Positions 469 through 64,000 of a DNA stretch of 64,000 bases are shown piece by piece. The stretch comes from Trichosphaerium sp. ATCC 40318. Its lineage: Eukaryota > Protista > Tubulinea. The notes beneath the pieces were generated by a model. It searched no databases. It was not told the DNA's origin and saw nothing but the letters and a program-made list of their open reading frames with translations. The DNA is taken from the NCBI GenBank assembly GCA_038496445.1, contig JALMLS010000371.1, forward strand, positions 1 to 64,000. The letters are read 5' to 3'. Position 1 is the stretch's first letter. The number at the start of each line of letters is the position of its first letter. Position numbers and translations under genes: made by a program.

Positions 469-1575
469 CAGTGGTGGAATCGGACAAAATACGCGTGCCT
501 AAAACGTGCCATTTGCGTGGAAAATAAACGTGCCCAAAACGTGCCCAAAACGTGCCATTTGCGTGTTGTATATTTGCAATAAACGTGCCCAAAACGTGCC
601 ATTTGCGTGTTTTAACCATGACCTGTCCTTAATAGAAATTTGGAGAAAAATTCAAAATAAAAAAATTGACAAACTCAAACTCAACCATCTCACCCCAAAG
701 CCGATCGCCTCCAATCGTCAACAATAAAACATGTATTTTCACCCAAGTAAGCAGTAGTTAGGTTTGTATTGGCATGGCTTTAAAAGTAGGCGAAAAATCT
801 AAAAATACCCAAAACCAACAATTTCTTGATTTTCCTATTTTTCGTGAATAACTCAGGTTACTAGTACGAATCCTTTAAAAAACGAAGTATGGCCCACTAT
901 TAGGTACGATGCATGGTTTCGTGGTGGTTGGGGTTCGGTGCCCCTTTTTAAGGCAAAAAACGATAGAAAATAGATATTTAGGGTAGATTAAGGATATTAT
1001 GGCTCAATAACTCCATTAAACCCCGTTTTAAAGACGATTATTGGATTTGAGATTTTTGCCTAATTAGGTAAGTTCTTGCTTAAGTATTTACGATAAGGCA
1101 GGATTGGCGAAAAAAGCAGGTAAAATGGCAAAAACATGAAGTTGGTTGATATAAACTGGGTATTGTTTATGTGGGGATAGTTTTATGTAAAGTTTGTAAT
1201 AATTGTACCAAACCTCTTTGTAATCGTTATGTGTTATGTATCGTAATAAACTGTTATTTTCTTTTCCTCTATAAAGTGGTGTTTTATGCGTGCCCAAAAC
1301 GTGTGATATGCGTGGCAAATATGCGTGCCCAAAACGTGCCCAAAACGTGGAAAATAACGTGCTAAAACGTGCCCAAAAACGTAGATAATAAACGTGCCCA
1401 AAACGTGTCCAAAACGTGTGATTTGCGTGGCCAGCATGTGGAAGAGAAACGTTGCCTTTTGCGTGGAAAAAAAACGTGCCCAAAACGTGTCCAAAACGTG
1501 TCTTTTGCGTGGAAAATAAACGTGCCCAAAACGTGCCCAAACGTGCGATTCGCGTTCTGTCCGATTCCACCACTG
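469..1575 (+). mobile_element. Non-autonomous TIR DNA transposon, family A, complete (1107 bp), 2-bp TSD AC
   Basis: 18-bp perfect TIRs CAGTGGTGGAATCGGACA...TGTCCGATTCCACCACTG with AAAACGTGCCC subterminal arrays at both ends. Flanked by ac|...|ac. The empty site gctgtaacagt-ac-tgtaatcaag is at about 8358-8380. Confidence 0.92.
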
Positions 1576-2959
1576 ACTGTAATCAAGATTTTGGCATATA
1601 CAAAACCTGTATGTGACACATACTTTTGTCTTGTATTAGTTCATATGTGGCACACTTTTGACATGTATCTAACCTGTATGTGGTGCATATTTACTCAAAG
1701 GTATGTTAAAGTATCTGACATTGTTAAACACAACCCAACGCAAACCAACTGATATAAAATGGCCTCCTACCCTAAAAATTATGTTAGATAACAGTTGAAA
1801 GGTTCACAAAATGCTTAAGGCTGTTAGTTCTCTATGGAAAAATCAACAAACCACATGATATTTTGGAGATTTCTATCAAAATTACTTTCTGCCAGACACA
1901 CAAAGCCAGTATCCTTTAAATGTCATTGTCTCTTTTTGAATGGAATTATGCCAAAACTATTGAAAGTATGCTTGTCAAATGTATTTCACCAAATCTAAAT
2001 GGATGGTTGACTATACTTTGAAATATCCATTTAACAAAGAAAAAGCCATACATATCAGTTTTGTTATGCATTGTATTTGATTATTAGGGCATTTACTTAC
2101 AAACTAGAGGAGAAAACTTAATAAAGTGCAAAATGTAGCTTTTTGCTGTGTTTTGTTGTTTTATTGCATAACTTTGGTCTTTCTGTACAAACCACTCAGA
2201 AAATGTAGCATTAGGTATGATGCATGGTTTCATGGTGGTTTGGGGTTCAGTGCACCATTTTTAGGCAAAAACGACAGAAAATATGTATTTGGAGTAGTTT
2301 AAGGATATTATGGCTTAATAGCTATATTAAACCACTTTTTAAAGGCGATTATGGGTTTCAAGCATTTTTCTGAAATAGTCACTAAGTTGTGGTGGTTAAG
2401 TTGCAGTTGTAGGTCAGTAAGGCATGATGATAGAAATATCTCCAGAAACATGGTCGTTTTGTGGTAATGTATTGTAATGTATTGTAATGCTGTAATCAGA
2501 GATCACTTGTGTCATTAGTTCTTGTGAAGAGTGATAAAGCAAAAAAACAAGGAAAAAAAACAAAACATAATTAATATTTTAACCTTTATGTTCTTGCTGT
2601 CATGGACAGTCCACAAACAAAGTGACCACATTGCCACTTTGTGTTGATAAAGTCACAATGAATACAGCAAAAAAGTCACAACCATGCTTATCAGTCCATA
2701 TATCACTGATTATGGCTGGTTAGAGAGATTTTGCCTTTTTCATTTGTAAGGCTTCTTTGATGGTCTCCATTTGATTGATAAACTTGTTTTTAGCTTTTAA
2801 TGCAAGTAATTGAAGAAAGGGTAACTTGATCACACATTAAGGCATTTAACAAATGTTCTGAGAGTATAGTTTGGATTACAATGAAAGAGCAGACATTTTT
2901 AGTTATGGGTAAGGATTCTTCATATTTTGACATGGTTGTTAAAACAGTTACTGCTAGGC

Positions 2960-3249
2960 TTGTTATGCTGGAACTAATCACACGTGCCAAGATTGGGGTT
3001 GTCATTAAAGAGAACTGTTCAAAATTCATTTGCTTTGGAAGAAAGGAGGCGCAAAAGCTTGTTCCCCGCATGTGTCCCCCACATTTTTCCAAATTGGTAC
3101 ATTATTTAATAATGTTGGGTATTAATAGGCTTTAAGGCAATGTTATGTTGTAATATGATCCTAAGGACAGACCTCCCTTTAAAAAGATTATAATGGCCCT
3201 AAAGCAAATGAAAGAGTCTTGGAAAAACACAGAGCTAAAAACCTACTAG
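2960..3249 (+). pseudogene. TKL-type protein kinase C-lobe fragment in the palindrome spacer
   Basis: MLELITRAK...VPRMCPPHFSKL, a GT-AG intron, then AMLCC/(frameshift)YDPKDRPPFKKIIMALKQM, i.e. kinase subdomains IX-XI. Confidence 0.6.
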
Positions 3250-4019
3250 ATAATAAATGTTCAATTGTTTTAAAGGATGGTGCCTTCTTTTTACCTGACA
3301 AACCTTTTAGTTAAGACCAAAACACTATTTTAGTAGCCAAGGCTGTGTTTAACCATTTTTTTCCATATTTGTTCAAAGGTATGCTAAAGTGTCTGACATT
3401 GTCAAACACAACACACCCAAAGCTTCTGAAAATACACTCAAAGTAAGGAAAAAGCAATTCATATAAGCTCCATTATGCATTGCATATGAAAATGTTGCAA
3501 TTCATTTATACATGATCAGGAAATTTCCAACACTCACAAGCAATGTTTTGGCATCAACAAAACAGTCTTGTAGCCTTGAATATTACCAATTCCCAATGTG
3601 AATCATTACCAGACAAAGACAAGTTTATACAAGTGGCCACTACTGGAAATTGCTAATTGGATGGTTGATTTTAAAGAAACATGGGAGGATTGGGGTGCTG
3701 GTTTACTCCACCTCCTGATCCACCCCCTTTACCACCTACCAACTCCAAAAAACACTTATATCAACAACCAGTTAAAATTACTAACCCCACCCATATGTAG
3801 GTAGTAGGCAAAGACACAACTATTACTTAGATGATGAAAGCTCAGACGAGTGGGATGAAGATCTTTATTTTGAACTATGAAAATATAAAATGTAATAAAC
3901 AGCACACATGGTTATTGTCGTCCACAGCACAATAAACCCATCTTTTTTATTAAAAAAAAAAGTGGCATACAAACTCTGCATCAACACTACTCAACAACAT
4001 CACAGAAAAACTCAAGTAT

Positions 4020-4433
4020 CTCAAATCAATGGGATTTAAAGCCCCTCAAGACATCACTGTGAGGAGAAAGAAGAAATTGACACCAGATTAGTCAACTGGG
4101 TATTACAGCACTTTAAACTTTGGAAATTGTTGGTGCAATTTGTTTTTTTGCTCAATAATCCAAACTATACTCTCAGAACATTTGTTAAATGCCTTAATGT
4201 GTGATCAAGTTACCCTTTCTTCAATTACTTGCATTAAAAGCTAAAAACAAGTTTATCAATCAAATGGAGACCATCAAAGAAGCCTTACAAATGAAAAAGG
4301 CAAAATCTCTCTAACCAGCCATCATCAGTGATATATGGACTGATAAGCATGGTTGTGACTTTTTTGCTGTATTCATTGTGACTTTATCAACACAAAGTGG
4401 CAATGTGGTCACTTTGTTTGTGGACTGTCCATG
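4020..4433 (+). pseudogene. hAT-like DDE transposase remnant (partial mirror copy at about 2600-2878, minus strand)
   Basis: Manual translation gives ...IKEALQMKKAKSL*PAIISDIWTDKHGCDFFAVFIV, matching the hAT first catalytic-Asp motif (xxxDxWTD...F/YxAV). Stops and frameshifts are present. Confidence 0.65.
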
Positions 4434-5456
4434 ACAGCAAGAACATAAAGGTTAAAATATTAATTATGTTTTGTTTTTTTCCTTGTTTTTTTGCTTTATC
4501 ACTCTTCACAAGAACTAATGACACAAGTGATCTCTGATTACAGCATTACAATACATTACAATACATTACCACAAAACGACCATGTTTCTGGAGATATTTC
4601 TATCATCATGCCTTACTGACCTACAACTGCAACTTAACCACCACAACTTAGTGACTATTTCAGAAAATGCTTGAAACCCATAATCGCCTTTAAAAAGTGG
4701 TTTAATATAGCTATTAAGCCATAATATCCTTAAACTACTCCAAATACATATTTTCTGTCGTTTTTGCCTAAAAATGGTGCACTGAACCCCAAACCACCAT
4801 GAAACCATGCATCATACCTAATGCTACATTTTCTGAGTGGTTTGTACAGAAAGACCAAAGTTATGCAATAAAACAACAAAACACAGCAAAAAGCTACATT
4901 TTGCACTTTATTAAGTTTTCTCTCTAGTTTGTAAGTAAATGCCCTAATAATCAAATACAATGCATAACAAAACTGATATGTATGGCTTTTTCTTTGTTAA
5001 ATGGATATTTCAAAGTATAGTCAGACCATCCATTTAGATTTGGTGAAATACATTTGACAAGCATACTTTCAATAGTTTTGGCATAATTCCATTCAAAAAA
5101 GAGACAATGACATTTTAAAGGATACTGGCTTTGTGTGTCTGGCAGAAAGTAATTTTGATAGAAATCTCCAAAATATCATGTGGTTTGTTGATTTTCCATA
5201 GAGAACTAACAGCCTTAAGCATTTTGTGAACCTTTCAATGTTATCTAACATAATTTTTAGGGTAGGAGGCCATTTTATATCAGTTGGTTTGCGTTGGGTT
5301 GTGTTTAACAATGTCAGATACTTTAACATACCTTTGAGTAAATATGCACCACATACAGGTTAGATACATGTCAAAAGTGTGCCACATATGAACTAATACA
5401 AGACAAAAGTATGTGTCACATACAGGTTTTGTATATGCCAAAATCTTGATTACAGT

Positions 5457-6566
5457 CAGTGGTGGAATCGGACAGAACGCGAATCGCACGTTTTGGGCAC
5501 GTTTTGGGCACGTTTATTTTCCACGCAAAAGACACGTTTTGGACACGTTTTGGGCACGTTTTTTTTCCACGCAAAAGGCACGTTTCTCTTCCACATGCTG
5601 GCCACGCAAATCACACGTTTTGGACACGTTTTGGGCACGTTTATTATCTACGTTTTGGGCACGTTTTAGGCACGTTTATTTTCCACGTTTTGGGCACGTT
5701 TTGGGCACGCATATTTGCCACGCATATCACACGTTTTGGGCACGCATAAAACACCACTTTATAGAGGAAAAGAAAATAACAGTTTATTACGATACATAAC
5801 ACATAACGATTACAAAGAGGTTTGGTACAATTATTACAAACTTTACATAAAACTATCCCCACATAAACAATACCCAGTTTATATCAACCAACTTCATGTT
5901 TTTGCCATTTTACCTGCTTTTTTCGCCAATCCTGCCTTATCGTAAATACTTAAGCAAGAACTTACCTAATTAGGCAAAAATCTCAAATCCAATAATCGTC
6001 TTTAAAACGGGGTTTAATGGAGTTATTGAGCCATAATATCCTTAATCTACCCTAAATACTATTTTCTATCGTTTTTGCCTTAAAAAGGGGCACCGAACCC
6101 CAACCACCACGAAACCATGCATCGTACCTAATAGTGGGCCATACTTCGTTTTTTAAAGGATTCGTACTAGTAGACCTGAGTTATTCACGAAAAATAGGAA
6201 AATCAAGAAATTGTTGGTTTTTGGGTATTTTTAGATTTTTTCGCCTACTTTTAAAGCCATGCCAATACAAACCTAACTACTGCTTACTTGGGTGAAAATA
6301 CATGTTTTATTGTTGACGATTGGAGGCGATCGGCTTTGGGGTGAGATGGTTGAGTTTTGAGTTTGTCAATTTTTTTATTTTGAATTTTTCTCCAAATTTC
6401 TATTAAGGACAGGTCATGGTTAAAACACGCAAATGGCACGTTTTGGGCACGTTTATTGCAAATATACAACACGCAAATGGCACGTTTTGGGCACGTTTTG
6501 GGCACGTTTATTTTCCACGCAAATGGCACGTTTTAGGCACGCGTATTTTGTCCGATTCCACCACTG
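5457..6566 (-). mobile_element. Family A TIR element, complete (mirror copy of 469-1575), TSD GT
   Basis: Same TIRs, flanked by gt|...|gt. Confidence 0.92.
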
Positions 6567-52685: not shown

Positions 52686-53372
52686 ATGCTGAGCCTACCA
52701 GTAGAGATGCGTTTCATGATATTTAGCGCTGATGAGTACGTTTTTAACATGTGGCCAATTTTGAGCAAGGAAACAGCATACACAAGTCGGTATAACGATA
52801 AGCTTGAGAAGCACGGTAAATTCAGACGTAAAGAGATTGTTTTTAACCAAATACGTAAAATTGAATGTTGGTACAGAGATGATAAGCTTGATGGCTTGTA
52901 CTCTGAGTGGTATGCATGGGGTCAACTTTGCTCAGAAACTATGTACAAAAACGGAGTAAAACATGGCAGTAGCCACATATTTCATTCAAATGGCAATCTT
53001 CTTTCAGAGAGCTCATTCAAGGAAGGCAGACAACATGGTAAGCAGATGATATTTAATGAGAGAGGAGATTTAAGAGAGGAACGTACTTTTGTTGAAGGTC
53101 GTATTGATGGCATGAGAAGAGAGTTGTTTGTTTGTAATCCAGGGACAATTGGGTCCAATACTCAGTTATGTGAAAGGAAGTGCTTTTACAAGATGGGCAA
53201 AAAAGAAGGGATGTGTGTCACACGTTTTGAGAAAGGAAACACGTTTGAAGAGTGTTTTTATTTGAATGGAAAGTTGCATGGTACATACAGGAAGTGGAAT
53301 ACTAATGGAGTATTGGAATATCACCTCGTATACAACGAAGGAGTTCTGGTTGAAATAATAAAAAAAAAATAG
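52686..53372 (+). CDS. Intronless MORN-variant (YwqK-like) repeat protein
   Basis: Repeats such as YKNGVKHGSSHIFHSNG, FKEGRQHGKQMIFNERG and YLNGKLHGTYRKWNTNG, plus a degenerate F-box-like N-terminus (LSLPVEMRFMIF). Confidence 0.88.
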   Translation: MLSLPVEMRFMIFSADEYVFNMWPILSKETAYTSRYNDKLEKHGKFRRKEIVFNQIRKIECWYRDDKLDGLYSEWYAWGQLCSETMYKNGVKHGSSHIFHSNGNLLSESSFKEGRQHGKQMIFNERGDLREERTFVEGRIDGMRRELFVCNPGTIGSNTQLCERKCFYKMGKKEGMCVTRFEKGNTFEECFYLNGKLHGTYRKWNTNGVLEYHLVYNEGVLVEIIKKK

Positions 53373-53695: not shown

Positions 53696-56600
53696 TTAAA
53701 CTTTATTAGCATTTGGGCCAATAGTAGCCCATAGCTCTTTGCATGCATTTTTGGACGCTGAAGCAAGTAAAGATGTGTCTTCAACCTCCAAGCATATCGT
53801 ATGTCCTTTTTGCTTTGTAAATACAGCAGCTCGGCTCCACAAATGCTATATAACTTATCATTAACAAACACAAAATACAAACAACTAAAAACGTGCCGTT
53901 GCTGTCCAGCCTTTATCAAGGAGGAACACTGTCAATGAATCCTTCATTGAAGCTTCCAAAGAAGTAACTTGAGTCATATCGCTACAAGCCCTGTAAATAT
54001 CCATACAGGCATATTATTAAAAAAACACGTGCTCTGGGAGTGCTGATGCTAGCTCTTTCTTGGACGTTTCACCTAGAAGTGCAGGAAAAAAGATTTGTTT
54101 GTTGTTCTACAACACGTGTAAGAATGAAAGAGTAGTTATTTCTGTTGTTGTATACCTCAATAGTTGGTGCTACACCTTGAACACATGCGCGTGGATTTAC
54201 GATATATAAGACGCTGTGAAGTGCCAGTAAATTTGTAAAGTAAGACAAAATGCCAATGTCAAAATTCTCTAAAATGTATGCAAGCTACAGTCAAAGTCAG
54301 CATACGTAAAAACAGGTACAGATAAATAGTAAAAAAAATTAGTACACGTGTTGTCAAGAACCCTTTGTTGAATGCTGTTGCTTTTGAAGTAATTAAAACT
54401 CCAACTACGTCCATAATAACGTTAGGGTCCAAAACCACATAATTCGCAACATTGGGTGCATCATAGTATCTCTTGGTGAACCATATTAGAAAAAAAACTT
54501 ACGAAAATCCAACGAAAAGTTAGCTGTTCGTACAATGTATCCCATGTCACTTAAATATTTTGTTATAGAAAATAACTCATTATCATCATCTATACCACCA
54601 TATCCTTTTGCATATCTTCTCCATTCCTTGAAGGTGTTAAATGGATATGGAATGTTAGGGCTATATTTTTTTTTAACGTACTTGAAATTTTAGTATTTGA
54701 AAGTCACGTTTGAGACATGTTGCTAAGTATTGCATTCTCCAATGATTCATTCCTATTTTTTTCACCAATCCCATCGTTTTTCGTAAAGGCAGTTCACTTG
54801 ATACCTTGGATAATTGATTCGCAAGCTCTAAATTTATCAAGGGTTAACTCTCCATGTTCCAACATTTTCTACAAAAAAAAATACCTGGAATGCCTTTGCC
54901 AGTCATATTAGACACGAAACAAACACCCATGAAAGGAAATGAATCAACGTTATATCTTAAAACAAGTGCGCTATGTAGTTTACTAACATAGACCTTATTA
55001 GCAACATCTAGATGAGTTCCTGAAGGGCGTAAGACAAAACGTATAAACATTGAGATTAAAAAGTTTTTTGGTACCAACAATGAATATTGGAATTGAGCCA
55101 GAAGTGTCTAGTACGGACTGTATCCAAAAGTCCAGCCGATTTAGATCGGCATTACCTACATTGAAGCAAATGACAGCGGCACAATGTTCATGTGACAACA
55201 TCATCTTATAAGCAAGGTGGTAAACGGTTTGACCTGTCGTCAGTCACAACTTGTTTAAGAAAAAAAAAAATCTTAATCATTTCCGCACCTGCAAAGTCCC
55301 ACGTTATATGTTCAACTCTGTCCTCTTTTGGACCTTTTTGAGGTAGTTCTAGTAATCCTGTATCGACCCCATATGTAGTTAGAATTAAAAGTGGTTGATA
55401 CGAATGAGTGATCTGTTTACTGCTCAAAGAGTTTAAAGTTGTCGTCTTGCCAACATTGTTGTCGCCCAAAAATACCAAACGTGACCGATTTCCAACTTCA
55501 GCCGTAGCGCATACTGAGCGACAATAGTTCAATAGCGCTTTATCAGATTGACTAGCAAGTGCACTTCGTATACCACGAGGAATTGGAAAAGGTAACAAGT
55601 CCAAAGGGCATTCTGTGACAGCGAGGTTTGAAAGAGTCGGATGGACGAATAGAGACATTGGCAAGTCTTTCAAGTTCCTGTTGTAGCTTAAATTAATTGT
55701 TTCGAGTGCTGGAAGACATGAGAACATATCTGCTACAGTCGTAATATCGTTGTAGGAGGCATTCAGTGATTTTAATTGCGATAGATGTCTCAGAGATATC
55801 GGTAGTTCAATAAGCCCACACTCCCTCAATGTCAAGTGCGTTAAAGTGATCAGAGCTGATATTGCAGGGTAAGGTACATAAGTGAAAGTTGACTCTTCTA
55901 TCACAAGCTCTTTAACACCACCGCCCTATAGTCCAAGTCAGTTCAGACTATAACCAACGGGACGAAAAAAAAAGATTGAACAAAATCAAACCCTAAGTGC
56001 CTACCTTGAGTGCTATGAGTACATTGTCTATTGCGTTTAATTCAATATCATGACGCTTTAATAAATGAGCCTTAGTCACTAACCCTCTCGCACACTAGTG
56101 ATCGATTAATTTGGAAACAAAGTAACACGTGACTTTTTTCTCTTTTACCTTTATAACCTGCCTATTTCCGCCTAGAACTTGCTTCAAGGTCCGTACTGCG
56201 AGTTGAGCTTTTGCTGTTTTTTTACTCATATACATAGACTCCTTCCTTGATCTACTAGATGATAGAGATCCTGATACCATAATAACTGTTCCTTTTTTTG
56301 GATGAACTTCCTCTATAAGTACTTGTTGTAGCGTGAAATTCTTTCCAGATATATACTCCGCAAAGGCAAGTAATGAAGGAGGTTTAATATCATTCCTTGA
56401 TAAGTCTATAAGTTTTAATCTTTTGTTAAACGCCAAGCACTCTGAACCAAGCGTCATTAGTAGTTTTGGACCTAATCCATACGAAGGCAAGTGTAGCTCC
56501 TTTATAAAGTTATCTTCGCCTAATTTCTTGAAAAACAGAATAACATCATCAACGTTTACGCCACCACTACTTTTTTTAAGTAAAACAGTCGCTGGTGGTT

Positions 56601-56738
56601 TTAATTCGATTGATAGGCTTCGTTCCGCTTTAAACTTCTTTAACCATCTAGGCCTATAATAATAGCGTAAAATACTGTATTTTATCACGTGTTACGAACG
56701 GACAAAACTAACCATTTCGGTTTTTCTACTTTTTCCAT
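53696..56738 (-). CDS. Roco-family protein (LRR-Roc GTPase-COR), no kinase domain evident
   Basis: LRRs, then LVFLGDNNVGKTT, TYGVD, ITWDFAGQ, LDFWIQSV and IFIVG/THLD, then COR-like LSDMGYIV and YVVLDP. Confidence 0.85.
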
Positions 56739-58299
56739 CGTTTCTTCGTCTATACACTCCAGACGCTAATGACGCTCGATATAATACCCTGAGAACGCGC
56801 GGATATCCAAAAAAGATACCGCTAACCACCTGAACTGTAAAGTGAACAAGAAAGACGTTCGGTTACAGTTTTGGTGTATTCGTTTGTTGTAACCAGTTTA
56901 GTCATCGCTTTAAGTCACAGTTTATTTGCACGTGTTCTAAAACACGCTCACAACCGAATTCCAGCATTTTAGATCTCTACATACCAACACATTCGCTTAT
57001 AACCTAATTTGTAACAAAGCCACTTATCGACGAGGCCGAAGGCGCTTTATGCTTTAAAACCTTTGTGTATCACTCCACTCCCGAGACTTGTAACGCATAA
57101 AACTTTATGCTCTTATCATCACTTTACTCTAATGTACTGTTCGTCTTTACGATTAAGACAAAGTTGTATTCTACAAGTCATGTTTTCTATTTGTACCAAG
57201 CAAAGGCTAAGTGGTTTTTTTATTTGTGTATACATTTCGTATTACATACTCTTCGCTTTGATATGTTTACATTACGATAGCTTGATTGTGTGTACACTGG
57301 ACAGATTAAATCCAATTATATGTTGAATTTGGCATGGTAAGTTTAATGGCATTACACTTGCAAGACTGTTCGTACCTCCATTAATCGCAAGTTACTCAAA
57401 AATATATATGAAACCTAACAATTCTACAAGATTCTTTACAACTCATACTTACGCAACCACGCAAAGGTTGTTACTTCACTTTACACTCTCAATTTTATGT
57501 GCTGGTTCTGTATGCGAAACAAAGCCAAGATAACTTTAGACCATTGTTTTATTAGGCATTAAGCTTTGTAAGAAACCATGCAAAACAATAAAAAAGGAAT
57601 ACTGATGCATTCTTTTTTGCTAAATGAAAGAAAAAAAAAAGGAAAACTTGTGAAATGTTAATTAATAGAAGAAAAAGGATTTTATTAATTACAACAACCC
57701 CCTTGTGTGAACCAGCGAAACCCTATGTATAGAATAGAAAGTAAGTTATTAAAGGACACTACATATGTACCGTTCTGCAAGCCATCATCCCTTATCACCC
57801 AAAGCCAATCTGTGAATCCTACCTAATGATTACATCTACTGCACCCATCCTGTGCATCCACATCCCATTGTACCTAACCTATTGTGAGTTACACCTACTG
57901 CGCCTGTAATCTGTTCCTTTGTCATCTCAACACGTGTTAAACTCGGTCAACCAGTGAAAACTGACCCAGCTGGCATGTGCTAAGAGGATGAAGAACAGAC
58001 TACAGTACAGATACCACCACAGTCGTATAATGAGCAGTAGGTGTAACAATCCCAATACCCCCATCCTGTGAATCCTGCCTAACGCACCATCCTATGAATC
58101 TATACCCACCTTGTACCTACCTATTGTAAGCCAAGTTGCGAAGGTAGAACAGTTAGTCAATACACTTTTAAACATCCAATAAACACGTACTTATGCTAAG
58201 CCACCACTTGCACCCAAATCTGTATCCCTTTGCCAACATCTCTTAGCCAACCTGCACAGAAGTTACCATCAATTACACCACAACTTACCCTCATGTTTA

Positions 58300-59040
58300 T
58301 AGTTAATGCCAATAATAGAACCACCTGACATATACATCTGCTCATAAGATGAGCACCTAAAACTGCATATCCCTGGATCAATTGGCTATACACACCTTCA
58401 TCATTAGTGTGTATAGCGCAGTTAGTTAGCAAATGAACTTGTACCTCCTCATTGAACACCTCATCTTGTGCTAGTACCTAAGTTAGCACCTATTGCACCA
58501 CAACCTACCCATATGTAGTTAGCGCCAATAATAGAACCACCTGACATCTACATCTGCTCATAAGATGAGCACCTAAAACTGCATAACCCTGGATCAATTG
58601 GCTATACACACCTTCATCAATAGTGTGTATAGCGCAGTTAAGTTAGCAAATGAACTAACTCCGACATCTTGTGTGCTAGTACCTAAAACTGCATATCCCT
58701 GGATCAATTGGCTATACACACCTTCATCATTAGTGTGTATAGCGCAGTTAGTTAGCAAATGAACTTGCACCTCCTCATTGAACTCCGACATCTTGTGTGC
58801 TAGTACCTAAAACTGCATTCCCTGGATCAATTGGCTATACACACCTTCATCAGTAGTGTGTATAGCGCAGCTAAGTTAGCAAATGAACTAACTCCGACAT
58901 CTTGTGTGCTAGTACCTAAAACTGCATTCCCTGGATCAATTGGCTATACACACCTTCATCATTAGTGTGTATAGCGCAGTTAGTTAGCAAATGAACTTGT
59001 ACCTCCTCATAGAACTCCTACATCTTGTATTTGACCTAAA
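58300..59040. repeat. Tandem array of five 109-123-bp hairpin units with long/short alternation
   Basis: GCTATACACAC-n11-GTGTGTATAGC starts at 58385, 58601, 58711, 58834 and 58943. Confidence 0.95.
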
Positions 59041-59644
59041 CGTCAGTCAGCAGGCTGTACCTTTGTCCAAGTGCGATCCTCCCATCCTTTAAGTGCGCTA
59101 CTATGGTATAAAATAAAGGTTAGTCATACATCCACAAGGGCTTCACTACATACCTTTTGTAATGCCCAACCATTTCCGTCTTGTTTTGCTAGATGAGTTA
59201 GAAGGTGTACCACTACCTAAACGTACTTGGGTTGACTGCCTTTTCCTTTAATCTGCCATTGCCATTCAGACCATCCACATCTATTACCCACCCAAGTAAT
59301 AGAACTTGTCTTTCCTTTAGGTGTTACCTAGATGTGTTACACAGCGTATGAATTACCTTTCCTCTCAAGTACTTGGCTGGTCCCTTTCCTTGTCGAGGTT
59401 GAAGTTGTAACACTTGCATGCTCATGTTGATGTACTTGGCTTGAGTGCCTTTCCGTCAATTGAGTCAATGCATCACATCTGTTCCCACCCAAGTACTAGA
59501 ACTTGTCTTTCCTTTAGGTGTTCCCTAGATGTGTCATACAGTTGCTTGAATTACTTAGTTGGAATCATTGATTCCCTTCATCCACCCAGGCATGTTACAT
59601 TTGTACATGCTTAGGACTGTAATGATGTGTTACAATATCTCGAT

Positions 59645-60328
59645 TAGTATTTCTACACCTCCTTGATGGGAAGTGTTATAATACTAGAAGAGATAATAAC
59701 TTTCATACACAGGTAGTTTAGTTGTTGCCCACTGAGGACTTCAATACATACCTTGTGTAAATGCTTACCTGGCTTAGCACCCGATTAGCATTTCTACACC
59801 TCCTTGAAGAAGTGTTATAATGCTAGAAGAAGTGATGCAAGTTAGCGCCACGCTGTGTATTAGCTCTAGAACTCGATTAACATTTCTACACCTGCTGTAG
59901 GTGTTATAATGTTAGAAGAGAACAAAGGTCAGTTATACGTTCATATGGTTTGTTGTAGCCCATTAAGGACTTTAACACATACCTTGTGTAATGTTAACCA
60001 TGTGACTTGCACATTGGTGTAACATTGCTCAGAACTCGATTAGCATTTCTACACTTTTCCTTTTTTGGATGTGTGTTATAATGCTAGAAGAGAACAAGAG
60101 CATTGGTGCTTTCAAATGTTGCCTACTAAGGGCATCACTCTTGACACATTGGAGTCTTTCCTCCCATAAGTACTTGGACAAGTGCCGTTCCTTGTGGGTA
60201 AAAGTTGTAGCACCCCTACATCATAAAAGATGTTGAGGCAACTGATGACATGTACTTGTTAGGGTACTATGTCTGTAACCCAGAACTCGATTAACATTTC
60301 TACACCTGCGGTGGGTGTTATAATGATA
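59645..60328. repeat. Five dispersed copies of hairpin module alpha
   Basis: TAGCATT-TCT-ACAC-(variable)-GTGT-TAT-AATGCTA at 59645-59686, 59786-59825, 59878-59914, 60041-60086 and 60292-60328. Confidence 0.9.
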
Positions 60329-61321
60329 GAAGAGAACAGTTACAACACAACCAAATATTTGGTTGTGGTAAAGTGTGTAGAGTACAGTGTGCTCATCCCC
60401 ACCAAGGTACTTAAGACATGTCTTGTTCCCAAGGAGGCTAAATGCATTGAATGTAGTCTCTGCAGGTTGATGGTCCTGCAACGTCAAATATGAACCATTT
60501 ATTCACCATACTGCAGTATGCAGCTGTGGTGTACAGAACAGAAGTATTTGACAATGCATGATGTAGTTACATCATCACATCTTTCAAGCTGCAGATCGAT
60601 TAACACTGCCTATGCTATGTTTTTTACGCATTTTTCATAGGGGTTACGTGATAGAAGACCTGACAAGGGGTAAGAGAAGCGACTTCTAGGGCACATCACA
60701 CAAAAATTCTTTGTACCTGCCTTTTTTGGCAGAATTTTAGTTTTTTTGGATTGGTGCCTCAAAGTACTTTCTTCTTTTATGCTATATTAGGCTACACGGT
60801 TGTAAGACTGGAGGTCTATAGCGAAAATATTCAGTTTTCAAGGCACCTAGAACACTGTTGTAACAATCGTAGCTATCTACATACCCGTTGTGTACTGAGG
60901 TTGTCGGTTTGAAAAAAAAACCTCCAACACGATTATTGGTTTGTTGTTTCTGTGCTTTGGGCTGCTTTTTCGTTGTTGAAAGTGCACGAATAACTACTCG
61001 TTGGACCTAATACGCTCTTGAAAGACCCGTCACAGTATTTTATTGCGTCCACGCGTATTGAATATAAATAGAAATAGTATCAAAAATCCAACCGTTTTTT
61101 TTTACCAAAACTGCCTTTATTTATCTGTATCGCGTTTATAACCGCTAAGGCGTTGTTTTCCGAGACCTATTCGGCGTTTTCAGCGTTCCCCTCCACGACG
61201 AATTTCCATGACCTTCGAAAGAAAAAAAAATCCACAGATCCAATCTCGTTTCTTTTTTTGGAAATGGTTTTTTTATTGTTTAAACACAAACAAGCTGGCT
61301 AAAGTTGAGAGAATCTTGGGT

Positions 61322-64000
61322 TTAGTGAGGCTCAGAATGAGCAGCATTTAGTTGCTTTGCAAACGATTTTCCTCTGTATCCTCTTATAATGGTCCTACCA
61401 TTCGCATTTCCACCGGTGTATCTGTACTGTATACCTGTTCCGTCCTTGTTTAACAGAACATAACGAACTCCATCTCCTGTAGGTATCTTCTCCCCAAAGC
61501 GCTTATTCTGGTATCCATTCTCAAGAATAGTAGTAGATTTCGCTGCATAAGGTTGGTAAGAACCGTTATCTTCAAGCCAAAACCATGAACCACGTGCTAC
61601 GACAAAAAATAAGCAAAAGACTTCAAAAACCATTTCCTCGTTTTTTAAATAGAAAGTGTTTTTTACCTATTTGTCTTGTGAACCCTGTACTCTTCCTCTG
61701 TTGTGTCATTGTCTTTAAATTTGCAGTATAACGTCCTCCAACAACCTATGTGAGATTATTAAGAAGAAATTATACTTACAAAACGTACAGTGATAACTAC
61801 TTTGCCTTCTTTGTATCCATCTTCCAACTAAGAAAAAATCAGTTACGACGAAAAAAAAGTTAACGAAGTTGTACCGCTTTGTTGTCAGCTGGTCCATACT
61901 CATTCCATTGGGAGTCATCCTTGTAGAACCAATGAGGTTCAGGAACGTTAATACCTCCTTGAGAAGCGGAACCTTCTTCTTCATCATCGTATTCCTCAGC
62001 GTTAAGGAACTCAATTTTAAAAGCTATTCTGTCCTTATGGATAGCATAACGATTGACGTGCTGCATAATGAGCGCTTCGTAGCTACCAGTAGCAGCAAAG
62101 TACTGTAACGCAAGAGTAGAATCCAAAGGATCGTCAACGTCTGGGTTAAGAAGCAATCCATAAACACAATTCAACACGGTAGTCATAGCAGTGTCGGCTG
62201 TCCAATTTCTATGAAAAAAAGTTAGATAAAAAAACGAGCGAATTTGCTTACCTTGTGAAAATAGAGTGACATATTTTACCTAAAAGTAGGAGGTTAGAGT
62301 AATCGCTCGTGTATATATTATCGCACCGTATTGGTTGACGTTACAATGACGTATTGGTGTAATGAACCTCATTTCAGGAGCAGACATTGGGTAGTCTTCA
62401 GGGAACTGACAGTACAACAAGTACGTTCCATTCTTATATGGTGATGCCTCTGGCGCTTCCATAATAACTCTCCAGAAACCAATATCCTCTTGACAAGGAT
62501 ATATATCGAAAGCAGGATGCTTCGCTAAAACAACACGTCAAAACATGATCCAAAAACTGCAAAGCAAAAAAAAAAAAAAAGTGTTTTCTTGTTCTTACCT
62601 TTCATGAGTTTTGTCAACTCCTTCATTAATCGACGAATACGATTAGTCTCTACTGGCGCATCTTTCTCGGAAGCATTCTTTAAAGTAGTCTCAAGAGTTT
62701 GAACTGGTTTTTTCAAGTTCGTAGGTTGCTTCCTTGCAGGAACACGTGTGTCACTGCACTCATCGAGAGGGAATCTCCAGTTATTTCCGAATTTTAGTAA
62801 ATCTCCTCTATTAGATACAAAATTCTTGATTGCCTCCTAAATAACAAGTGTAAGGCTTTCAGAAAAGGCAGTAAAATGAAAAAATTACCTGATCTGGTCT
62901 CTCATATGAAGTCAATAGAGTTTCAAGCTCATTCAACCTAAGAGCTTGTTTTAAGTTCTCAGGAGCAAAAGCGTAACCGTTACTCGCTTTAGCTATTGCA
63001 CGCAACTATAAAATTCTGTAAGCTCTTTTATTTTGAAGTGGAAGGCAAACTGAAATGTGGAGAAAAAAAAGTCAAAACAATTTGCGTACCTTGACGTTTT
63101 TAGCGCCTTCACCAATCATAATCGCATCCAAAGTAATACGGTTGACCTAAGCAATAGCATGTCAATCAAGAAATTTACAGCTAAAAGTGTACCTGTAAGT
63201 ATTGCGCAACCTTCCATGGAATAGATGAAGACTTTGTGTCTTCACCATCAGTAAGACACATAACACGTAACCTAGCGTTCTTGTGCTTTTTCTTATATGC
63301 AACAAGCTCTTCTCCAGCTTTTTGAATAGCATCCCAAAGCTTGGTTTCACCCTCAGCATCAGCGGAATCAACTTGATCTCTGAATATTTCGTATCTATTC
63401 GGCGAAGGAAAAAAGTCAACAAACATCTTTTGCGATGTAATTTGGTTGGGAAAAAAAAAAGTGTAATTGCACGTACAGAGGTGTTAATTTACACGAGTAA
63501 TCAACATCATTTCCAAAAAGAATTAATCCAATATGATTAGGGTAATCATAAGCTTGAGACCTGTTGATGAAGGCATGGAACAGTTGTTTTACAGTCTCCA
63601 TACGTGTCAAGCGCGCCTCGTTCCTAAAAAATTAAATCAGCCCGCAAACCAGACAACCTGTTGTCTAGTACTCATCGTGTGGTGCTTTCATCTCAATTAC
63701 ACCACCAAGAGGGTATCTACTGATTTTTTGGTTGTCATGGAAGAGAGTACCAGTGTACCATCCATCTCCAATTTTTCTAAGTAAGGGTAAGTTCAAGTGC
63801 ATGTAGGCACTGTGTACCTCATATTGGTCCATAGTGAAAACGATTTTGGTTGGATGAGACCGAGTTTGTGCCAAATTAGTAACTTCAATTCGTATGTCTT
63901 AAAAACAACTAGAGTTAGCTTAACAACCACACTAAGTCACGTACGGTTAAGCTTGTTGATACTGTGACATCAAACATTGTACCATGCATGCTCTTAATCT
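61322..64000 (-). CDS. vWA - ubiquitin-conjugating (E2/UBC) - WWE - WWE protein, 5' part outside the window
   Basis: vWA motifs (IGLILFG, ETKLWDAI, CLTDGED), UBC motifs (SPYKNGTY, FPEDYPMSAPEMRFITPIRHCNVNQYG/KICHSIF, PDVDDPLD) and two WWE-like repeats (WFYKDDSQWNEY, WFWLEDNGSYQPY). Confidence 0.88.

Follow-up and report, generated by a model that had tools for sequence, protein, structure and literature searches.

The window analysed here, 64,000 nucleotides (nt) from Trichosphaerium sp. ATCC 40318 (contig JALMLS010000371.1, positions 1 to 64,000), contains a gene-free stretch of ∼3 kb that is flanked by two minus-strand genes, a WWE/E2-type gene upstream and a Roco-type leucine-rich repeat (LRR)/GTPase gene with exons at 55206–56688. 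The longest open reading frame (ORF) between these two genes is at most 88 aa. The stretch instead holds a locus built from repeats, all of them local and direct, in which three types of short module, termed alpha, beta and gamma, adjoin a five-unit tandem array and a single long hairpin. Part of this locus is transcribed without splicing, and we tentatively interpret the whole as a lineage-restricted non-coding RNA locus in which short RNA structures have been kept over several diverging copies.

The coordinates of the features are collected in Table 1. Read 5′ to 3′ on the minus strand, the modules follow in the order beta 7, alpha 5, beta 6, gamma d, alpha 4, gamma b, alpha 3, alpha 2, gamma a, alpha 1, beta 5 to beta 1 and gamma c, ahead of the tandem array, with a possible sixth alpha preceding beta 7. 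These positions and this order match those proposed in an earlier, sequence-only reading of the window, save for a run of betas that was given there as three copies and counts five here, because b2 and b5 are of a variant form; the beta copies total seven, between 59214 and 60438. A covariance model of alpha (R1) searched over the window returned only the five alpha copies, at 78–86 bits, and the 9.7-bit trace of the sixth. Alpha 3 and alpha 5 are 95 % identical across exactly 57 nt, and their flanks do not align. As a separate observation, the plus strand at 59763–59773 reads GCTTACCTGGC, which resembles the 5′ end of U1 small nuclear RNA (snRNA), probably by chance; on the minus strand the same site is a perfect 5′ splice site (CAG/GTAAGC) beside the AAG/GTATGT of gamma, at a single gamma copy.

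Table 1. Features of the repeat-module locus, in order of coordinate
Feature	Position	Strand	Basis or remark
CpG-depleted domain enclosing the locus	57520–60800		CpGs thin after 57515 and return at 60797
AATAAA hexamer	57686–57681	minus	Low-coordinate transcript end, where coverage stops
Transcribed, unspliced, ORF-less part	57683–59073	not settled, minus slightly favoured	X1 and X2 contigs colinear with genome
Direct repeat of ∼80 nt, left copy	57805–57887		Families D7 and D8, spacing 242–256 nt
Long imperfect hairpin, 160 nt	57888–58047		Perfect 14-bp outer stem GTTACACCTACTGC / GCAGTAGGTGTAAC
Direct repeat of ∼80 nt, right copy	58061–58128		Families D7 and D8
Five-unit tandem array	58260–59030		Repeat finder, BLAST, folding; units 81–97 % identical
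Array 11-bp hairpins	58385–58417, 58601–58633, 58711–58743, 58834–58866, 58943–58975		
Gamma c	59120–59162		Repeat family D5
Beta b1	59214–59255		
Beta b2	59280–59338		Variant form
Beta b3	59360–59398		
Beta b4	59423–59463		
Beta b5	59477–59535		Variant form
Alpha 1 hairpin	59635–59691		Repeat finder, covariance model (81 bits)
Gamma a	59718–59760		Minus strand carries AAG/GTATGT, 5′ splice site-like
Alpha 2 hairpin	59776–59832		Repeat finder, alignment, covariance model
Alpha 3 hairpin	59868–59924		BLAST against window, covariance model
Gamma b	59949–59991		Repeat finder
Alpha 4 hairpin	60030–60096		18-nt terminal loop; alignment, covariance model
Gamma d, weak	60105–60150		By eye; missed by repeat finder
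Beta b6	60161–60200		
Alpha 5 hairpin	60282–60338		Repeat finder, alignment, covariance model
Beta b7	60398–60438		
Possible degenerate sixth alpha	60587–60672		Covariance model 9.7 bits, E = 7.6; ends alpha-like by eye

Alpha is a convincing predicted hairpin. Across the five copies 92 % of cells are paired over 18 pairs, a value reached by only one of 500 shuffles, and in a control in which the partner was slid by 1–3 columns the pairing falls to 34–44 %. Three pairs have changed on both sides. Within the middle helix of 7 bp, one G-C pair has become A-U and one C-G pair has become U-A, two double changes that are independent of each other. The arms are ∼24 nt long, with 18 of the 24 positions paired and two conserved 3 × 3 internal loops (AUA/AGA and UUC/AUC) whose letters do not vary; the length of the terminal loop is between 5 and 18 nt. 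Additionally, the single CpG of alpha (TCGA) is retained in all five copies within an otherwise CpG-poor domain. Two further readings of alpha, as the 3′ end of a Helitron and as a mirtron, were dropped because the end motifs that define them are present in three of the five copies only.

For beta, likewise scored on five copies, 73 % of cells are paired compared with 61 % in shuffled sequences (6 of 500 shuffles) and 28–53 % in the slid controls, with seven pairs changed on both sides; its structure was derived from the same sequences that were used to score its pairing. The core, GGAA...AAGTAC, is invariant and lies between a short apical stem and basal stems that differ in sequence from copy to copy (CAAG/CTTG, TTGA/TCAA, TAAA/TTTA and CCCA/TGGG). 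In the loop E or sarcin–ricin (bulged-G) motif, AGUA stands opposite GAA; in a similar manner, beta on the minus strand has GAA facing AGUA, both invariant, between its covarying basal stem and its short apical stem. Unlike loop E of 5S ribosomal RNA (rRNA), the strand order is reversed, GAA coming first, and b2 and b5 do not fit. Loop-E motifs had been suggested to favour the minus strand for the most part; the beta GAA/AGUA arrangement, a sequence pattern, holds for that strand only. A likeness of beta to 5S rRNA loop E by way of a shared AGTACTTGG was rejected, as a 9-mer is at chance level.

The contrast between modules and spacers is clearest in a segmental duplicate of the series alpha-gamma-alpha, where the alpha arms are 83–91 % identical and the spacers 43–53 %. 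Terminal loops in this duplicate are 17–45 % identical, and the gamma segment is 73 % identical, rising to 86 % in an ungapped 43-nt core. As the module arms are kept so far above the spacers, the modules would have been maintained either by selection or by conversion. The covariation in the predicted alpha and beta stems is real, although it comes from five copies each; with these compensatory changes, and with modules kept far better than spacers, the view that copies hold their pairing and internal loops while spacers diverge is borne out.

The locus is non-coding and lies outside all Rfam families. When the ten longest ORFs of the locus were compared with Pfam none passed the threshold (the single sub-threshold match had E = 0.39), and a protein search with the 87-aa ORF of the array found no homologue. 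A covariance-model search of 55000–64000 against Rfam returned nothing at E ≤ 1, nor did anything reach the gathering score in the whole 64-kb window, in which ARAGORN also found no tRNA gene, leaving neither a tRNA nor a tRNA-derived short interspersed nuclear element (SINE). Both strands were scanned by script for C/D-box small nucleolar RNAs (snoRNAs), defined as RUGAUGA and CUGA 45–140 nt apart with a terminal stem, and zero candidates were obtained; UGAUGA is confined to the loop of the array hairpin. These searches agree with the sequence-only reading, which had seen no credible ORF and had not recognized the locus as rRNA, snRNA, signal recognition particle (SRP) RNA, RNase P/MRP or snoRNA. 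Scanning metagenome contigs with the alpha pattern gave 76 single matches, approximately the chance expectation, and BLAST of the locus against these 76 matches found only 52-nt stretches at 81 % identity, too little to count as homologues. This is probably a lineage-specific non-coding RNA locus.

Evidence for transcription comes from contigs of two public runs, X1 and X2, the second of which is labelled as a different organism (B). In both, the neighbouring WWE/E2-type gene is spliced, so both runs represent RNA, and both are silent at 56.5–57.68 kb and 60.24–61.23 kb, which rules out carried-over DNA as the source of the coverage. X1 coverage is continuous, colinear and unspliced over ∼57.68–59.07 kb, at a depth of 13–36 compared with 41–76 for the neighbouring spliced gene, and X2 covers 57.68–58.05 kb and parts of the array more deeply than it covers that gene. 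The alpha and gamma modules are present in RNA only as short, differently arranged contigs of organism B, one of which (∼170 nt; depth 18.9, against 26 for the neighbouring gene) comprises alpha with a different terminal loop, a 14-nt spacer and the first 26 nt of gamma. The part at 57.68–59.07 kb is transcribed, has no credible ORF and shows no protein homology, and in these respects it is a long non-coding RNA (lncRNA). Spliced reads assembling an ORF had been named beforehand as a finding that would speak against such an RNA; over this part the contigs are unspliced and contain no ORF.

The only joint in the locus contigs is a repeat-unit skip and none is splice-like, so array units acting as back-to-back introns are unsupported. 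This bears on whether the locus could be a protein-coding gene of micro-exons and very short introns, which we consider hardly credible. Introns in this organism are 43–70 nt long, and the minus strand does offer motifs like a 5′ splice site and a branch point (AAG/GTATGT in gamma, CTAAC...TAG in the array), but the RNA contigs run unspliced across the putative introns, the frames of the modules are inconsistent, neither the repeat periods (109, 110 and 124 nt) nor the indels of variant contigs are multiples of three, and the Pfam and protein searches were without a match. One such variant contig in X1 spans the long hairpin with nine substitutions and four indels; others end loosely in unrelated sequence at 57768 and 59137, and these loose-end sequences are absent from the window. 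With their different flanks, the variant contigs mean that parts of the locus exist in the transcriptome in more than one version, and these versions may be alleles or paralogues.

The strand of the transcript is less clear, with minus being somewhat the more probable. At the low-coordinate end, the AATAAA-type signal announced for ∼57685 was found as a minus-strand hexamer, and a contig of X2 abuts adapter sequence at 57683; the same relation of contig end to hexamer is seen in the bona fide minus-strand neighbour. The adapter is also oriented as on that neighbour, an argument for minus only on condition that the library was stranded. A plus-strand AATAAA lies at 59112–59117, close to the other end of the coverage, and both strands offer TATA-like and AATAAA strings at each end of the transcript. 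Were the transcript on the minus strand, the alpha/beta/gamma array would be situated directly upstream of the transcribed part and silent in X1, as might suit an array that works as DNA, that is, as an enhancer or promoter array in cis for the 1.4-kb transcript or for the downstream Roco-type gene. The near-palindromic CCAAGTACTTGG in beta and the sequence conservation of module cores would fit such a role too. However, the palindrome itself is not conserved, only GTACTTGG, the stem positions covary, which is unlike protein-binding sites in DNA, and the RNA of organism B contains alpha-gamma units; we therefore regard a DNA-level function as very unlikely.

The transcribed part carries two kinds of hairpin. 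The units of the tandem array start at 58355, 58571, 58681, 58805 and 58914, with lengths of 216 (an extended first unit), 110, 124, 109 and ∼120 nt, and every unit contains a perfect 11-bp hairpin consisting of GCTATACACAC, an 11-nt loop and GTGTGTATAGC. The 160-nt imperfect hairpin, which is absent from the sequence-only reading, is bracketed by the ∼80-nt direct repeats; its minimum free energy (calculated on 166 nt) is −74.3 kcal/mol on the minus strand and −63.9 kcal/mol on the plus strand, its inner part has a z of −3.8, and its fold is preserved both in the variant contig and in organism B. By its 14-bp terminal inverted repeats (TIRs) this element looks like a miniature inverted-repeat transposable element (MITE) or like a plant microRNA gene (MIR). 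Across the locus more broadly, the mean folding z is ∼−0.95 at 59.06–60.7 kb compared with ∼−0.15 in the flanks (p ∼1 × 10−3), and the tandem array is similarly stable (mean z ∼−1), the p values for array and modules ranging from 4 × 10−4 to 1 × 10−3. This excess is alike on both strands, and at 57.69–58.3 kb none was detected in 100-nt windows. Perfect short hairpins in the module region are modestly above shuffles, at z = 2.2, equal to the right flank. With an excess as modest as this, the description of the locus as saturated with hairpins was too strong.

The CpG content of the region sets it apart from its surroundings. The CpG observed/expected (o/e) ratio is 0.33 over 57.69–60.70 kb, compared with ∼0.9–1.2 in the adjacent flanks and 0.87 in the whole window, in keeping with the CpG-poor character already ascribed to the locus; TG/CA o/e is raised to 1.37, and two thirds of the domain's CpGs are gone. 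A CpG-richer, promoter-like stretch had been proposed at ∼60.7–61.25 kb, and the composition is as described (CpG o/e 1.27 at 60.7–61.3 kb), but X1 coverage there is zero. The only other island of such depletion in the window, at 2–5 kb (o/e 0.11–0.15), is a giant foldback (1536–5496) with arms at 1536–2878 and 4156–5496 that are 99–100 % complementary, a 1.28-kb spacer and no long ORF, which could be a source of long-hairpin RNA, a foldback transposon or an assembly artefact. Since that island is a foldback, CpG loss marks hairpin-forming repeats in this window, and as the locus is CpG-poor in the same way, we infer that its domain is probably treated as repeated DNA and CpG-methylated.

A match between the CpG-poor domain and the other hairpin-forming repeat of the window would be expected if the locus were a small-RNA precursor, its long, array and alpha hairpins being cut by a Dicer-type enzyme into microRNA (miRNA)-like or small interfering RNA (siRNA) products that perhaps direct local CpG methylation. 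The great stability of the 160-nt hairpin (∼−74 kcal/mol) would also be explained, as would the lack of the module half in an ordinary RNA-seq run, for which the products would be too short. Moreover, alpha resembles polycistronic miRNA clusters and their paralogues, with tandem diverged hairpins, both ∼24-nt arms conserved, loops and flanks free, and compensatory changes. Unlike such clusters, however, each alpha carries two fixed 3 × 3 internal loops, hence just 18 of the 24 arm positions are paired; beta and gamma are not miRNA-like and would be poor Dicer substrates, and the long-hairpin region is recovered as intact contigs at good depth. On these grounds a small-RNA precursor appears unlikely.

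Several known systems offer closer or looser parallels. Repeat-module lncRNAs include NORAD with its repeat units, Xist with its A-repeats and the Drosophila roX RNAs with their stem-loops. As in these, several short structured units are kept in a non-coding transcript locus whose spacers drift, and the units of NORAD, Xist and roX are thought to offer the same protein-binding site in each copy, a role for which we propose an analogy here. Unlike them, the present locus interleaves three module types, has been shown to be transcribed in part, bears no sequence relation to them and is known from sequence and RNA contigs alone. By analogy, it would work most like a repeat-module lncRNA and be laid out most like a cluster of miRNA paralogues. 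Among protists, a family of hairpin RNAs is found in the Dictyostelium Class I RNAs, which are multi-copy, hairpin-type RNAs of 42–65 nt with a structure-conserved stem and a fixed sequence motif (PMC7919456). Each Class I RNA is a gene of its own that has conserved AAG...CUGU ends, an 11-nt motif and, at ∼60 nt upstream, a Dictyostelium upstream sequence element (DUSE) (PMC7919456); the ends of alpha differ from these, and the DUSE-like strings of gamma, judged by eye with no formal scan, are loose and at inconsistent distances.

The reading that we favour, tentatively and at just short of an even chance, is that of a lineage-restricted non-coding RNA locus that arose by local tandem and segmental duplication and acts as RNA. 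Under it, the low-coordinate 1.4 kb (∼57.68–59.07 kb) would give rise to an unspliced RNA without a reading frame that contains the 160-nt hairpin and the five array hairpins, and the adjoining 1.6 kb (59.1–60.7 kb) would be an array of the three short modules, including the alpha and beta hairpins. In these, stems would be held by compensatory change and internal-loop letters fixed, with terminal loops and spacers drifting; a multivalent ribonucleoprotein (RNP) platform or sponge could then be formed by a small set of protein-recognition hairpins, present in many copies on a single transcript or a few of them. Because fixed internal loops and free terminal loops fit protein-recognition elements better, an RNP platform is preferred over a small-RNA precursor. 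The function and the strand, as well as the union of module array and array transcript in one RNA, are in this account things that we infer. A more specific version, in which alpha and beta represent two new families of structured RNA motif (beta being of loop-E type) that sit with gamma on a dedicated transcript, a multivalent scaffold or sponge for proteins in this marine protist, and in which the hairpin array and the long hairpin belong to the same RNA or to a stable 3′ product of it, seems to us rather doubtful. The repeat-module non-coding RNA locus is real and probably functional.

A number of results weigh against this favoured reading. X1 coverage is zero at 59.26–61.23 kb, comprising the alpha/beta/gamma half and the proposed promoter stretch, so that of the single 3-kb transcript envisaged earlier the part at 57.68–59.07 kb stands as transcribed and unspliced, and the transcript as a whole is not demonstrated, with 59.26–60.7 kb at zero in X1. 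G-U pairs, which were said to favour the minus strand, show no asymmetry (five on minus and four on plus in alpha, two and four in beta), and with counts so alike selection at the RNA level on one strand is not demonstrated. The beta hairpins are thermodynamically weak, and b1, b2 and b5 taken alone do not adopt the beta fold. Gamma is conserved as a block of sequence and lacks a significant fold (z −1.5 to +1.3), which leaves its proposed multi-helix junction without folding support. For each module the covariation depends on five paralogous copies, and gene conversion between modules, of which the 95 % identity and sharp edges of alpha 3 and alpha 5 may be a sign, could mimic constraint. Organism B differs at 14 of 659 positions from those pieces of the locus that are ≥ 90 % alike, a comparison biased by the inclusion of such pieces only, and at 8 of 506 nt from the neighbouring gene, where all seven listed differences (61370–62153) fall at third codon positions, ∼4–5 % of these; the two organisms are thus close relatives. 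This divergence gives a weak hint of constraint on the locus. With a single locus and one close relative behind it, the claim as a whole is a modest one.

Finally, the CpG depletion and the variant contigs, whose flanks differ, are both compatible with repeat DNA that is multi-copy and silenced, and hence with the main rival. On this view the locus consists of CpG-methylated DNA in decay, of repeat or transposon origin and lacking a function of its own; its transcription would be incidental, its hairpins derived from palindrome-prone tandem duplication or from small foldback or MITE-like pieces, and its similarities due to gene conversion. The sharp edges of the CpG-poor domain (0.33), the 1.3-kb foldback arms in the other such island, the loose ends in unrelated flanks at 57768 and 59137, the exactly 57 nt shared by alpha 3 and alpha 5 between unrelated flanks, and the absence of a preferred strand among wobble pairs would all follow from this rival, and the 160-nt element with its perfect 14-bp TIRs, in a CpG-poor domain, looks like a MITE or foldback element. 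Unlike a MITE, however, this element shows no target-site duplication and no other copy in the window, and BLAST of the locus against the whole 64 kb gave no match outside 58260–60338. At the edges of the 3-kb domain the best direct or inverted terminal alignments score 20–22 against a shuffle mean of 21.8, so no long terminal repeat (LTR) or TIR rises above shuffle level. Many dispersed copies with transposable-element hallmarks had been held to count against a functional RNA; neither terminal repeats nor copies in the other 61 kb of the window were found, and the variant contigs and the repeat-like CpG-poor domain touch on this point in part. Neither conversion nor decay explains the compensatory double changes in short stems; furthermore, conservation of the modules in an old duplicate far exceeds that of the spacers, and in two organisms the locus is expressed at a level comparable to a neighbouring gene. 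Weighing these points, we consider functionless repeat debris possible and, on the whole, somewhat unlikely.

To our knowledge, structured lncRNAs are almost unknown outside animals, plants and yeasts. The favoured repeat-module locus provides a traceable transcript and, in two short hairpin motifs, internal evidence of selection, making possible a direct test of whether repeat-module RNAs of protists serve as protein platforms. Should it instead prove to give rise to small RNAs, or to be a methylated repeat, it would still mark how this genome recognizes and silences hairpin-forming repeats.

With regard to the neighbourhood, the WWE/E2-type gene (minus strand, 61297–62400) has five introns of 43–70 nt that are spliced in both runs, bounded by GT..AG and all ending in TAG. 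Its 3′ untranslated region (UTR) looks very short, with the contig end at 61297 lying 25 nt past the stop and an AATAAA ∼20 nt beyond. Further away, an apparently complete plus-strand single-exon ORF at 52686–53372, the exact protein of which is absent from a public gene-call collection, begins with ATG and encodes 228 aa that are MORN-repeat-like.

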